In this document: positions 41,048 to 58,739 of the stretch, in pieces
How positions within the stretch are numbered: the first letter of the stretch is position 1
Layout of the letters: every line of letters starts with the position of its first letter
Source: Octopus bimaculoides
Lineage: Eukaryota
Assembly: GCF_001194135.2 (NCBI RefSeq)
Contig: NC_069005.1
Coordinates: 35,224,021-35,288,020 of the forward strand
Direction: 5' to 3'
DNA length: 64,000 bases
Made by a program: the position numbers and the translations under genes
The notes under the pieces: model-generated
The model's database searches: none
What the model was told of the DNA's origin: nothing
Seen by the model: the letters and a program-made list of their open reading frames with translations, nothing else

Positions 41048-41485
41048 ATGAGGAGGATGCCATGCGTTTGCACCTTCACTGGATACAGTTATGCATTGGT
41101 AAATGATAAGGGCATCTCAGCATAGAAAAACTGCCTCAAAAGCCTCTGTCTCACCCATGTGGCATGGAAAAGCGGACATTAACATGATGATGATGATGAT
41201 AATTGACTTAAAAAGCCATGAAATAAATTTATTTAACAAAAATCATTTCATATAATTGTTGATGAGAGGAGCCCTGAAGCGTTCGTTGTGATTATTGAAG
41301 AACAGGTTTTGCTCAAAGCACCATTGTTTGGTTAGACTCTGTAGACAGTTTAGAATAACTTCACATTAAGTGAGCCAAACATTTTTTTTTTAATATTTAA
41401 TTAAAATTTCAATCTTTAGTTTTAATGATTTTGCAATGAGAAGTCAAATAAGATTGAAATACATCTAGGTTTATCCCTACCAAAC
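41048..41485 (+). repeat. Direct duplication, copy 1 (partner 58269-58739)
   Basis: Colinear, highly similar match over ~440 bp, mostly substitutions by eye. Confidence 0.92.
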
Positions 41486-41587
41486 ATCACCCTTATTCTT
41501 CATTGAATGTCTCCAATTTAGACTTCAAACTTTTCTTCCATGCATTGTTTCCTATTTTTCCTTTTTTTAATCTGAATTAATCGTTAG

Positions 41588-41638
41588 CCCTTTTCAAACC
41601 AACCCTAACCCTAACCCTAACCCTTTTCAAACCAACCC
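41588..41638 (-). repeat. Interstitial telomeric repeat, ~(TTAGGG)3-4, flanked by an 18-bp direct repeat
   Basis: cccttttcaaaccaaccc-taaccctaaccctaa-cccttttcaaaccaaccc. Confidence 0.85.
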
Positions 41639-42013
41639 ATCCTGGGACCACTTTTCATTCTATTATACGACACTCATCATCATTCTTTAACAATCCTTGT
41701 CAATTTTTCCATTTCCTGTAATTCTCCAGAAATAATGGAAATTTGTAATGATGTGATAAAATCTGGTGTTCTGCAGATAAAAGCATTTGTAGAAAGTTAA
41801 TGCATCCCTATTTTTTTGGATATATTTACTAAATCTTTGATAATGATGGTTTTATGTTGAATTTTAATCTCATCAGGGTTTTTTTTTTTTTTTTTTTTTC
41901 ACAAAGGAATACACTTAGAGAAGAATATTTCTTAATCCAGTTGGATTTTGTTAAGCAAACAAACTGCAATTCCAATTAAGCCAAAAGCGAAAACGATTTT
42001 GATTTTTTTAAAT

Positions 42014-56068: not shown

Positions 56069-56959
56069 TAGGAAGCAGTGGTTGTTCCATTGTGCCATTA
56101 ATTAATGAGGATCACCTGAACCCAGAAGAGAACATTTCTAGCTAAAAGAACAGTCAGCTTGCTTTGCAACCATGTGGTTTTTGTTTCAGTCTGAATGCAC
56201 AGCGCCTTAGGCAAATGTCTTCTTCTATATTCCCAGCCTGATCAATGTCAATAAACGATTCGTTCCCTCTTTCATTTTCCTCATTATAAACACCGACAAT
56301 TCCTTTATATGACAATGTTCTTCACTTCATTTTTGAATTCTTGGGAGATATTTTGATTGTAGTTGAACAAAATCTCTCTTCAGAAACTGTTTTTTAAAAC
56401 CAAATGACAGAATTTAGTTTTTTTAATAAAATTTGTTAAGAAATACTAAATCTTACTCATTTGACTTTATTTATCCTATTTTGGTCATTGGACTGTTTAA
56501 AAACACACACAAAAAAAAATCCTTGAATGTTTTCTCAGGAAATGAAATCATTTTAGAATAATTGCTTCTTATAAGACCCTATGCAGGATGTACCTAAGGA
56601 CTCTATCCCAACCAGCCTCTCAAGAGTAGTGGATGGAGATAGCAGGATTTTATTTAATTTCCTTTGGAAAATTCAGATTTATTGTATATGTGCAAATAAA
56701 CCAAGGAACAATATCTTCATTAGGTTTTTTCTCATTGAGATGGGAAGAATTAAGAAATTGGGGGTGAAAAAAGAAAAAAGGCTTTGCAGAGAGCAATTTT
56801 GTCTTTCATCCTTTTGGTGGGGTGATAAAACAAAGTACCAGTCAAGTACTAGGAGGGGGGGAGGTCGATGAGATCAACTAACTCCCTCCCCTCAAAGTTG
56901 CTGGCCTTGTGCCTAAATCTGAAACCAACAACCAGAATGGACAATTTGCAACTGTTCTG

Positions 56960-57709
56960 GCAGACACATTAGCCAAATTGACTTCAGGTGTGGAAGCAAG
57001 GACTAGAACTGAAGGGCCTTAGAATCAACCTAGCTAAAACCAAAGTCCTAATAAGTAGGAAGGTAGAAAAATCGCAAACACCTTCAGGTAGATGGCCCTG
57101 CTCGATCTGTAGAAAAGGCTTAGGTAGAAACTCTATAAGATGCACCCAGTGCAAGCTATGTACACAAGAGGTGCAGCAATGTCAAAGGAAGGTTAACTAG
57201 GAAATTAAGTTAGTTTTTGTATGTAGCAGATGTTCAGGAGCTATAAACACTGTAAATGTGCAGAAAATAACTTCTGCCACATTCCAGGGAGAAAAACTAG
57301 AAGTGGTTGTTAGCTTCTGATATCTAGGTGACCTAGTTAGTAGTTGGGGAGGGTGCACTGAAAGTGTAGCTGCTAGAATAAGAATAGCCTGGGCAAAGTT
57401 CAGAGAGCTCTTACCTCTGCTGGTGACAAAGGGCCTCTCTCTCAGAGTAAAAGGCAGACTATACGACGCATGTGTACGAACAGCCATGCTTCATGGCAGT
57501 GAAACATGGGCCGTGACTGCTGAAGACATGCGTAGGCTCACAAGGAATGAAGCCAGTATGCTCCGATGGATGTGTAATGTCAGTGTGCATACTTGACAGA
57601 GTGTAAGTACTTTGAGAGAAAAGTTGGACCTAAGAAGCATCAGTTGTGGTGTGCAAGAGAGATGATTGCGGTGGTATGGTCATGTGGCGAGAATGGATGA
57701 GGATAGCTG
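56960..57709 (+). mobile_element. RTE-clade LINE 3' portion with a Cys-rich insert
   Basis: WKQGLELKGLRINLAKTK...CSICRKGLGRNSIRCTQC...YLGD...IRIAWAKFRELLPLL...MLHGSETWAV...RWYGHVARM; few disruptions; runs into a gap. Confidence 0.9.
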
Positions 57710-58268
57710 NNNNNNNNNNNNNNNNNNNNNNNNNNNNNNNNNNNNNNNNNNNNNNNNNNNNNNNNNNNNNNNNNNNNNNNNNNNNNNNNNNNNNNNNNNN
57801 NNNNNNNNNNNNNNNNNNNNNNNNNNNNNNNNNNNNNNNNNNNNNNNNNNNNNNNNNNNNNNNNNNNNNNNNNNNNNNNNNNNNNNNNNNNNNNNNNNNN
57901 NNNNNNNNNNNNNNNNNNNNNNNNNNNNNNNNNNNNNNNNNNNNNNNNNNNNNNNNNNNNNNNNNNNNNNNNNNNNNNNNNNNNNNNNNNNNNNNNNNNN
58001 NNNNNGCGAAATCACGATAGCACCTGTGCCCAGCGTCGCCTTTCTGGCACTTGTGCCCGCAGCATGTGTAAGGACTTTCGAGTGAGATCGTTGCCAGTGC
58101 CCCTGGACTGGCTCTTGTGCTGGTGGCACATAAAATACACCATTTTGAGCATGGCCATTGCCAGTACCGCCTGACTGGCCTTCGTGCCGGTGACACGTAA
58201 AAGCACCCACTACACTCTCGGAGTGGTTGGCATTAGGAAGGGCATCCAGCTGTAGAATGATGATGATG

Positions 58269-58739
58269 ATGAGGAGGATGCCATGCGTTTGCACCTTCAC
58301 TGGATACAGTTATGCGTTGGTAAATGATAAGGGCATCTCAGCATTGAAAAGCTGCCTCAAAAGCCTCTGTCTCACCCATGTGGCATGGAAAAGCGGACAT
58401 TAACATGATGATGAGGATGATGATGATTGACTTAAAAAGCCATGAAATAAATTTATTTAACAAAAATCACTTCATAAAATTGTTGATGAGAGGAGCACTG
58501 AAGCGTTCATTGTGATTATTGAAGAACAGGTTATTCTCAAAGCGCCATTGTTTGGTTAGACTCTGAAGACAGTTTAGAATAACTTCACATTAAGTGAGCC
58601 AAACATTTTTTTTTTATATTTAATTAAAATGTCACTCTTTAGTTTTATATTTAATTAAAATGTCACTCTTTAGTTTTAATGATTCTGCAATGAGAAGTCA
58701 AATAAGATTGAAATACATCGAGGTTTATCGCTACCAAAC
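58269..58739 (+). repeat. Direct duplication, copy 2 (contains an internal 31-bp tandem duplication)
   Basis: Matches 41048-41485; atatttaattaaaatgtcactctttagtttt occurs twice at ~58616-58677. Confidence 0.92.

Follow-up and report, generated by a model that had tools for sequence, protein, structure and literature searches.

A copy of a POT1-upstream non-coding segment beside the TATDN3 promoter of Octopus bimaculoides: a probable lineage-specific insertional duplication

Small insertional duplications, or templated sequence insertions, arise in double-strand-break repair (MMBIR/FoSTeS, polymerase-theta-type end joining). The pair of direct repeats considered here lies in a 64-kb stretch of Octopus bimaculoides chromosome CM046625.1 (the whole of the DNA analysed, hereafter the window) and resembles such insertions in several respects: the segment is a few hundred base pairs long and appears to have been copied in cis from a template close by, which is itself intact, microsatellite or microhomology sequence and a short filler seem to accompany the junctions, and the hallmarks of transposons are missing. 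A pair of LTRs is a second comparison, given two direct repeats of a few hundred base pairs, a few percent diverged, that bracket several kilobases. Unlike such a pair, however, the repeats enclose an intron-containing host gene, and one would-be LTR stands alone at the orthologous place in other species; with no TG...CA ends or TSD and a host gene as interior, an LTR pair was rejected.

The two copies (41048-41485 and 58269-58739) are colinear direct repeats, alike yet non-identical, and both BLASTN and MAFFT place them where a first-pass annotation of the window had put them. BLASTN pairs 41048-41424 with 58269-58647 at 95.3% identity (E=1e-173) and 41388-41485 with 58643-58739 at 93.9%, while the MAFFT alignment holds 17 substitutions in 434 aligned bases (96.1%) and 33 gap columns, the latter due to a microsatellite indel of 3 bp (ATG/AGG) and to a stretch of 31 bp that is perfectly duplicated in tandem in copy 2. 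Homology ends sharply on both sides, and comparison of 38428-42992 with 55000-64000 gave no further HSPs beyond the unit ends. The copies lie in direct orientation on one chromosome, 17.2 kb apart, subject to an unsupported scaffold join at 57710-58005. By public annotation, copy 1 ends 530 bp before the POT1 ATG (42015) and copy 2 ends 260 bp before the ATG (58999) of TATDN3, a TatD-family gene (the annotated TatD_DNase gene starts at L001 26985, window 58998), and the pair brackets every POT1 coding exon present in the assembly (42015-56065), all in agreement with the first reading. The features of the two sites are as follows.

40860..41059, plus strand: SINE-A, a decayed copy of an abundant octopod SINE, with the mutated (ATG)n tail ATGAGGAGGATG at its end
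41048..41485, plus strand: copy 1, the source copy, still in its ancestral surroundings, with the POT1 ATG 530 bp downstream
41060..41200, plus strand: SINE-B relic within the unit, the 3' part of a member of the same SINE family as SINE-A, with its own (ATG)n tail
41201..41485, plus strand: AT-rich non-repetitive part of the unit, 28% GC
58020..58257, plus strand: SINE-A', flanking copy 2 on the left and truncated near position 196 of the ~304-position reference
58258..58268, plus strand: (ATG)n stretch at the junction of SINE-A' with copy 2, from a TRF array of period 3 (58257-58280) and the alignment
58269..58739, plus strand: copy 2, the probable derived copy, which would have entered 5 bp before the conserved TATDN3 promoter block
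58612..58678, plus strand: perfect tandem duplication of 31 bp (2.2 copies) within copy 2, without a counterpart in copy 1
58740..58744, plus strand: TACCA filler at the right junction, which reads CGCTACCAAAC-TACCA-TTTTTAAATAAAC
58745..58998, plus strand: conserved TATDN3 promoter/5' block with GC-rich box, CCAAT and CACGTG, aligning with O. sinensis locus L003 from ~42804
58999..59067, plus strand: TATDN3 (TatD-family) exon 1, MAGNLSLFSIDAHCHLADSQFTN; annotated gene, Pfam TatD_DNase

Each copy is composed of 12 bp of SINE tail, a decayed SINE relic of ~140 bp and 285 bp of AT-rich non-coding DNA. The earlier remark that only the start of the unit resembles a common repeat was correct in kind, although the repeat-like part extends nearer to 150 bp than to the ~120 bp proposed. 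The duplicated unit opens with the last 12 bp of SINE-A (41048-41059); SINE-A itself aligns at 68.6% identity with a reference SINE copy (35760-36070) across its 3' 167 positions and occupies the corresponding site at both O. sinensis loci. In SINE-B just the last ~55 bp still match other SINE copies (72-87%). This relic is 97% alike between copy 1 and copy 2, against 68-87% among the SINE copies of the window, and consequently the duplication would have followed the decay of SINE-B, a stretch already decayed having been copied. To the left of copy 2, SINE-A' (58190-58257 against reference positions 129-196, 86.8%) is a different SINE copy that was not copied from SINE-A. The SINE family is very abundant, with about 14 copies in the window and many in Argonauta. 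No Rfam family was found at gathering thresholds in 38000-64000, a tRNA scan gave nothing near the unit, and the unit has no ORF of note; it shows no sign of mobility, of coding or of any activity.

Evidence on which copy is the older comes from related species. The unit is present upstream of POT1 at O. sinensis loci L002 (9073-9479, gene start at 10001) and L003 (4536-4952) and at O. vulgaris locus L005 (9070-9472, located by BLAST and aligned with short flanks). At L002 and L005, the loci with a whole annotated POT1 start, the homologues lie ~520-530 bp upstream of POT1, and at L003 ~550 bp upstream of the conserved exon-1 ATG. Copy 1 is inside a colinear block (40381-42992) that corresponds to L003 3848-6430 and L002 8412-10384, and homology at both O. 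sinensis loci is continuous through both unit boundaries; at O. vulgaris L005 it runs through the upstream boundary, with only 13 bases aligned past the downstream one. O. sinensis L003 has a POT1-like gene followed by TATDN3 in the same order and on the same strand as O. bimaculoides, and copy 2 is absent across the entire POT1-like-TATDN3 interval there. The TATDN3 promoter block begins at window 58745 (L003 42804), right after copy 2 and the filler, and just upstream of it O. sinensis carries a different insert bearing an inverted repeat rather than an exact empty site. A colinear O. sinensis counterpart of SINE-A', sought as a marker of the empty site, was not found among the SINE matches, which were non-colinear only.

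The copies are also each other's closest relatives. They are mutually 96.1% identical, and either is 88-93% identical to the O. sinensis homologues; in substitutions, copy 1 differs from copy 2 by 3.9% and from O. sinensis by 7.3-7.5%. Substitutions at 41152, 41331 and 41339 and a deletion of ~20 bp are common to copies 1 and 2 against all three other loci, such that the clade is defined by three substitutions and one indel whose polarity assumes the O. sinensis paralogues to be outgroups. Since O. sinensis is without copy 2 and the two copies share these substitutions and the deletion, copy 2 would be a later copy of copy 1 in the O. bimaculoides lineage. One copy thus sits in its ancestral context, the other is missing from the O. 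sinensis site, and the two are mutually closest, as in an insertional duplication; we judge it probable that copy 2 arose from copy 1 by a real insertional duplication confined to the O. bimaculoides lineage. Judged from these alignments, the duplication would be later than the split between O. bimaculoides and O. sinensis. The adjacency of POT1 and TATDN3 is by the same reading older than the duplication, because O. sinensis has the adjacency without copy 2 and the copies are mutually closest with a derived deletion and derived substitutions.

The first-pass annotation had offered the repeat as a footprint of the rearrangement that placed POT1 before TATDN3, and this did not survive the comparison: O. 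sinensis L003 has the adjacency without any copy upstream of TATDN3. An older duplication might nevertheless be imagined to have accompanied segmental placement of POT1 before TATDN3, with subsequent loss of copy 2 on the O. sinensis side and gene conversion homogenising the pair in O. bimaculoides. The rearrangement itself did occur, since the POT1 to ITIH-like arrangement of Argonauta, O. vulgaris and O. sinensis L002 makes POT1 before TATDN3 a derived paralogous placement; the other insert upstream of the O. sinensis TATDN3 promoter could have replaced copy 2; the private changes in copy 2 (16) are about equal to those of each O. sinensis locus (19); and gene conversion has been active at this locus in O. 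sinensis, with a 13-kb tract at 97.5%. Against this, the unit is internal to the paralogous block, 1.4 kb from its edge, the copies hold derived states and a rare indel in common, their differences are evenly spread (~1 per 25 bp) with no conversion patches, and one gain is simpler than gain, loss and conversion together. We regard such a history as very unlikely. Two further schemes were rejected: tandem duplication of a 17-kb unit, given the absence of homology after copy 2, and insertion of a POT1 block with a 440-bp target duplication, given the O. sinensis adjacency without copy 2.

Whether the copies might instead be independent insertions of an unclassified interspersed repeat (composite SINE-like or non-autonomous), with many more copies in the genome, turns on their ends and their surroundings. 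Each copy opens with ~150 bp of sequence from the abundant octopod SINE family with an (ATG)n tail, and the two ends are the same in both copies. The unit is unlike that family in other respects: 285 bp are foreign to it, the tail is internal, and the relic is too decayed for movement of its own and yet 97% identical between copies. Copy 1, moreover, is no insertion, but part of a colinear block common to three loci in two other species, where it is filled at 3/3 homologous O. sinensis and O. vulgaris loci with no empty site found. The 285-bp part (41201-41485, non-SINE) occurs exactly twice within the 64-kb window, turns up solely at its place upstream of POT1 across 178 kb of sequence from loci of O. 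sinensis, O. vulgaris and Argonauta, and is nowhere else in these 242 kb; over that sample the pair is low-copy and looks like a real local duplication rather than a high-copy TE. The unit termini read TGAGG...CAAAC and the next bases differ between copies; no TSD, TIR, TG...CA ends or terminal tail were seen at the unit ends or in the flanks, the (ATG)n tails being at the 5' edge and internal to the unit and not at its 3' end. Finally, copy 2 bears the private changes of copy 1, including the ~20-bp deletion, which argues that a neighbour and not a master copy of a family was copied. Independent insertion thus has only a slim chance of being correct. SINE 3' transduction or retro-copying, in either orientation, was rejected, terminal tail and TSD being missing.

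The absence of TSD, terminal repeats and tail at copy 2 points instead to DNA-level templated insertion during break repair as the form that the insertional duplication may have taken. A piece of ~450 bp upstream of POT1 would have been copied at the DNA level with its source left intact. It begins in the microsatellite tail of a dead SINE, takes in another dead SINE and ends after 285 bp of AT-rich spacer. The new copy would have been pasted on the same strand 17.2 kb downstream, where a truncated SINE lies on its left and the conserved TATDN3 promoter on its right. The likely route would be repair of a chromosome break with microhomology-primed copying from a nearby template, a templated insertion of MMBIR or alt-end-joining type. 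Possible signs of this route are a left junction within an (ATG)n run and a right junction with a 5-bp templated filler; the filler, TACCA, repeats a TACCA that the copied segment itself has 4 bp from its end. This mechanism is read from two junctions only, with no pre-insertion allele to fix the breakpoints, and in that it differs from the templated insertions to which it is compared. Private substitutions number 16 in copy 2 and 4 in copy 1 (binomial p=0.012), where a simple clock predicts otherwise, and the excess is at most suggestive of error-prone synthesis.

By itself the finding is of little weight, adding another small non-coding duplication to a genome rich in repeats. It does, however, remove a tempting but wrong story, in that the repeat is not the scar of POT1-TATDN3 juxtaposition. 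It further provides a cleanly dated case, with the source kept at three other loci and the derived copy private to one lineage, and could exemplify templated insertion of a break-repair type beside a promoter.

The unit might alternatively be a cis-regulatory module of POT1 that TATDN3 has gained, with shared control of the two genes as the result, a reading that is compatible with the duplication history and adds function to it. Both copies lie a few hundred base pairs before a start codon and point the same way, the position of copy 1 at ~520-550 bp upstream of the POT1 start is kept at four loci, and on the O. bimaculoides branch copy 1 has changed at about 6-7 positions against ~16 expected from the flanks. 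Between species, by contrast, conservation of the unit does not significantly exceed that of adjacent non-coding DNA (O. bimaculoides-O. sinensis identity 92.7% against ~90% in the flanks), and on both O. sinensis branches it has changed as fast as the flanks. Dead SINE and microsatellite make up half of it and the remainder has 28% GC, and the TATDN3 of O. sinensis does without it, the conserved promoter block beginning only after copy 2. We give this reading hardly any credence, and for a shared regulatory module as first proposed there is no evidence either way in the sequences. It would be a long shot that TATDN3 captured a working POT1-upstream regulatory element in the O. bimaculoides lineage and thereby brought a telomere-protein paralogue and a TatD nuclease under common control; the separate proposal that the fourfold substitution excess of copy 2 is a trace of error-prone repair is likewise a long shot.

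Low-copy repeats that act in NAHR offer a further comparison: the present pair is in direct orientation, flanks a whole gene and is 17 kb apart, and unequal exchange would delete POT1. At ~440 bp, 96% identity and a longest perfect run of 62 bp, however, it falls far below typical NAHR substrates. Deletion of POT1 by recombination between the copies, as earlier envisaged, is formally possible; yet uninterrupted identity reaches 62 bp at most and this POT1 copy already lacks four exons in the assembly.

In an assembly that is gap-rich and built from short reads, the reality of copy 2 is itself a fair question, and it could be an artefact, either through chimeric joining of a contig or through misplacement of a diverged haplotype of copy 1. 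The region holds five gaps. That at 42993-43092 is spurious, its flanking 49 bp being identical and both mapping to the same O. sinensis bases; 49282-49450 agrees with the O. sinensis spacing (171 and 160 bp); and 52427-52726 and 53282-53933 retain colinear order. The gap between POT1 and copy 2 (57710-58005) has no colinear support, and the join across it relies on scaffolding and on the POT1-like to TATDN3 synteny of O. sinensis. Suspicion thus arises from the number of gaps, from the one proven false with its 49-bp duplicated overlap, and from the start of copy 2 only 263 bp past an unsized gap whose join lacks independent support. Against it stand 17 substitutions and 2 indels between the copies, more than alleles would show, and flanks that differ on both sides, for which reason two haplotypes of one locus, a possibility raised at the outset, were rejected. 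The right junction, furthermore, lies within a gap-free contig (58006-64000), with unique sequence through to the conserved promoter and no repeat that might have prompted a false join. A duplicated haplotype or contig overlap describes the 49 bp at 42993-43092, not the repeat pair, and an artefactual copy 2 seems highly improbable. A record look-up of two window ORFs that span the copy-2/promoter junction, for independent (Logan) contigs, found nothing.

The comparison also bears on the genes. A homologue search with a 60-aa partial TATDN3 gave no candidates, and a human TATDN3 sequence was a lead for finding exons only and no evidence. A literature search for Octopus bimaculoides and POT1 found no papers. 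POT1 exons 2-8 and the last coding exon were located by tblastn with retrieved POT1 proteins, and exon 1 from the annotated protein, as listed here.

42015..42032, plus strand: POT1 exon 1, MELSKF with GTAAGT donor; ATG and donor conserved in both O. sinensis loci
43638..51188, plus strand: POT1 exons 2-8 (OB1 + OB2), as tblastn match coordinates and not exact splice sites
43638-43748, 45098-45241, 46128-46265 and 47275-47385, plus strand: POT1 exons 2-5, tblastn matches
48607-48678, 50113-50247 and 50907-51188, plus strand: POT1 exons 6-8, tblastn matches
55868..56065, plus strand: POT1 last coding exon, ending in ECCIKSFNGRNSVCFGMFDTVIAA and stop, from tblastn with O. sinensis, Argonauta and other POT1 C-termini

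The annotated protein P0153 (XP_052832569) starts MELSKFKPRTY, its coding sequence beginning at window 42014/42015, and Pfam recognises POT1 (E=1e-20) and POT1PC (E=4e-15) in the window gene. A homologue search with the concatenated POT1 exons returned a single O. bimaculoides fragment, P0001; in tblastn its matches to exons 5-7 are 100% identical throughout, and those to exons 2-4 and 8 are identical inside the exon, with divergence only past the splice sites. A LINE fragment at 56982-57593, without a Pfam match, is the only RT-like piece between the copies. Faults of the locus were exposed by the same comparison: beyond the false gap, a four-exon segment of the window POT1 copy is missing from the assembly, and the RefSeq POT1 model is truncated. 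Octopus carries POT1 paralogues, and these count for more in telomere biology than the repeat does.

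The first-pass annotation had described two similar, colinear segments ahead of POT1 and TATDN3, and both are confirmed by BLASTN and MAFFT; their distances to the start codons (530 bp for POT1, 260 bp for TATDN3) agree with the annotated gene starts.

Repeat pair and flanking genes (window positions)
40860-41059, SINE-A, a decayed SINE whose tail is the start of the repeated unit
41048-41485, copy 1 of the unit
42014/42015, start of the POT1 CDS (annotated product P0153 = XP_052832569, 365 aa, MELSKFKPRTY...)
~55597-55705, break where a ~10.4-kb POT1 segment is missing, at ~55704/55705 (compare ~23500-33895 in O. 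sinensis locus L003 and ~26540-37700 in O. sinensis locus L002)
55868-56065, last coding exon of POT1
58269-58739, copy 2 of the unit
58612-58678, perfect 31-bp tandem duplication in copy 2
58998, gene start of TATDN3 (Pfam TatD_DNase), exon 1 = MAGNLSLFSIDAHCHL

BLASTN aligns 41048-41424 with 58269-58647 (95.3%, E=1e-173) and 41388-41485 with 58643-58739 (93.9%), and apart from a single 48-bp SINE-tail match there are no further HSPs between 38428-42992 and 55000-64000. In the MAFFT alignment, 17 substitutions in 434 aligned bases (96.1% identity) and 33 gap columns separate the copies, the gap columns representing a 3-bp ATG microsatellite change and the 31-bp tandem duplication. Exchange between the copies could in principle remove POT1, but the longest perfect tract they have in common is 62 bp. 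The unit itself is composite. It opens with 12 bp, ATGAGGAGGATG, that form the mutated (ATG)n tail of SINE-A; another relic of this SINE family, much decayed and with an (ATG)n tail of its own, fills the following ~140 bp, and the final 285 bp are non-coding with 28% GC; this non-SINE part (41201-41485) occurs exactly twice within the window in a sensitive self-search. The SINE family has ~14 window copies at 68-87% identity, and many in Argonauta; copies 1 and 2 agree at 97% across the embedded relic, so the stretch was already dead when it was duplicated. The unit contains no Rfam family, no tRNA, only trivial ORFs, and no transposon end marks (TSD, terminal inverted repeat, TG...CA end or terminal tail).

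Comparison loci were fetched via POT1 protein clusters from O. sinensis (two loci), O. vulgaris and Argonauta hians. A look at related species, proposed in the first-pass annotation, finds one unit at each O. sinensis and O. vulgaris locus, always upstream of POT1.

Units at other octopod loci (locus positions)
9073-9479, O. sinensis L002, gene start at 10001
4536-4952, O. sinensis L003, ~550 bp upstream of the conserved exon-1 ATG
9070-9472, O. vulgaris L005, gene start at 10001

At L002 and L003, homology with O. bimaculoides crosses both boundaries of copy 1, into SINE-A on the left and ...ACCCTTATTCTTCATTGAATG on the right; at the O. vulgaris locus it crosses the left boundary, and the right side is aligned for just 13 bases past the unit. 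Consequently, copy 1 is ancestral sequence in place. That both segments are members of a repeat family is improbable, given this orthology, the lack of end marks and a private indel common to both copies. Substitution identity to the O. sinensis loci is 92.5-92.7% for copy 1 and 88% for copy 2, as against 96.1% between the copies. Aligning all five sequences shows substitutions at 41152, 41331 and 41339 and a ~20-bp deletion that are common to copies 1 and 2 and set them apart from the three other loci; copy 2 therefore came from the copy-1 lineage after its split from O. sinensis/O. vulgaris. Private changes number 16 in copy 2 and 4 in copy 1 (binomial p=0.012), and copy 1 has fewer changes on the O. 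bimaculoides branch than its flanks; error-prone copying, constraint or relaxed constraint, or chance are all possible causes of the unevenness.

L003 has a TatD gene 8.6 kb beyond a POT1-like gene and in the same orientation, the arrangement seen in the window, and no unit was found between the two. POT1-TATDN3 adjacency evidently predates the duplication, so that the earlier reading of the repeat as a footprint of the rearrangement placing POT1 before TATDN3 falls. The conserved TATDN3 promoter block starts at 58745 (L003 42804), 5 bp past the end of copy 2. Just upstream of this block, L003 has a lineage-specific insert (42440-42803) bearing a 47-nt inverted repeat (42556-42602 / 42729-42775, 74% complementary) and stopping within a few bp of the point matching the end of copy 2; since the ends nearly coincide, each lineage acquired a different piece of DNA at almost the same site. 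A scenario in which the duplication is ancient, O. sinensis has lost it and conversion has homogenised the copies would accord with the insert at the O. sinensis site and with conversion being active at the locus, but it requires three events rather than one and the copy differences contain no conversion patches, which leaves it little probability. Copy 2 is thus probably a real, lineage-specific duplication at the DNA level; the pair is real yet ordinary.

At the left junction a different, truncated SINE (SINE-A', 58020-58257) breaks off near position 196 of a ~304-position reference, and TGATGATGATG links it to the SINE-A tail carried by the copied piece; homologous exchange between the SINEs is ruled out, the join being out of register. 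At the right junction copy 2 ends ...CGCTACCAAAC, followed by TACCA, which repeats a pentamer 4 bp inside copy 2, and then by the conserved promoter. The junctions tentatively suggest templated insertion during break repair, whereby a piece from upstream of POT1 may have been copied to the site upstream of TATDN3. Such a repair would be consistent with the microsatellite/microhomology joins, the short filler of templated sequence, a source left intact 17 kb away in cis and the absence of transposon marks. Nothing in the sequence comparisons supports a regulatory role for the unit, the other possibility raised initially: its between-species identity (92.7%, against ~90% for the flanks) is not significantly higher, on each of the O. 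sinensis branches it changes as fast as the flanks do, and O. sinensis TATDN3 is without it.

That copy 2 is an assembly artefact is improbable: the two copies have different flanks on each side, and the sequence at the right junction is unique and lies within a gap-free contig. The fetched O. bimaculoides locus (GCA_001194135.2, CM046625.1:35256034-35289904) matches window 32014-64000 base for base, gaps included. The 100-N gap at 42993-43092 is false: it is flanked by two identical 49-bp stretches (42944-42992 and 43093-43141), each corresponding to L003 6382-6430, so that POT1 intron 1 carries a 49-bp artificial duplication and exons 1 and 2 are on continuous sequence. The 169-N gap at 49282-49450 agrees with O. 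sinensis spacing (171 and 160 bp), and the flanks of gaps 52427-52726 and 53282-53933 are in colinear order. Colinearity lends no support to gap 57710-58005, which separates POT1 from copy 2; the join over it rests on scaffolding and on the POT1-like to TatD order conserved in O. sinensis.

Matches of POT1 exons 5-7 to the O. bimaculoides POT1 fragment P0001 are 100% identical throughout, exons 2-4 and 8 diverge from it only where the alignment overruns splice sites, and exons 2-8 match Pfam POT1 and POT1PC. The 365-aa RefSeq model has a non-homologous terminal tail, and window POT1 is without the ~10.4 kb that holds four exons in O. sinensis (P0152 residues 337-507), which make up most of the TPP1-binding region at the C-terminus. 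Within a gap-free contig, the break adjoins a truncated reverse-strand SINE; the missing segment may have been genuinely deleted from a decaying paralogue or lost through mis-assembly. POT1 precedes an ITIH-like gene in Argonauta, O. vulgaris and O. sinensis L002, an order that looks ancestral, so the TATDN3-adjacent POT1, common to the window and L003, is a paralogous placement. The O. sinensis loci lie on CM016881 (L002) and CM016883 (L003) and are ~82-88% alike, save for a 13-kb tract at 97.5% (L002 20821-34134, L003 16763-31044) that suggests recent gene conversion. No second O. bimaculoides POT1 was found in the protein collection.

A telomere-type repeat, TAACCCTAACCCTAA, lies at 41606-41620, ~400 bp upstream of the POT1 ATG, bracketed by a perfect 18-bp direct repeat, CCCTTTTCAAACCAACCC (41588-41605, 41621-41638); the 33-bp insertion is missing at both O. 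sinensis loci, and is thus specific to the O. bimaculoides lineage and no conserved promoter element. Downstream of the POT1 3' end, ahead of the gap that precedes copy 2, is a non-LTR retrotransposon fragment (...LRVKGRLYDACVRTAMLHGSETW..., 56982-57593, forward strand), with no Pfam match and with relatives at 33221-33300 and, inverted, 21274-21512. A putative tRNA-Ser(GGA) predicted by ARAGORN (9171-9245, reverse strand) may be a genuine tRNA gene or the head of a SINE. A long imperfect TG/CA-rich array with 8- and 12-bp periods (9877-10700, ...ATGTATGTGTGT...) yields spurious open frames of 200-280 aa on both strands. Large inverted repeats at 1500-5600 and 15400-20950 are 80-99% complementary (1621-1832 and 20579-20790, for example, 99%) and contain trypsin-like serine-protease exons (IVGGSPAA...LTAAHC) at 4991-5305 (reverse) and 15841-16149 (forward), an arrangement suggestive of gene duplication in inverted orientation; another protease-like exon, the third, is located near 25000 (24978-25238, reverse).
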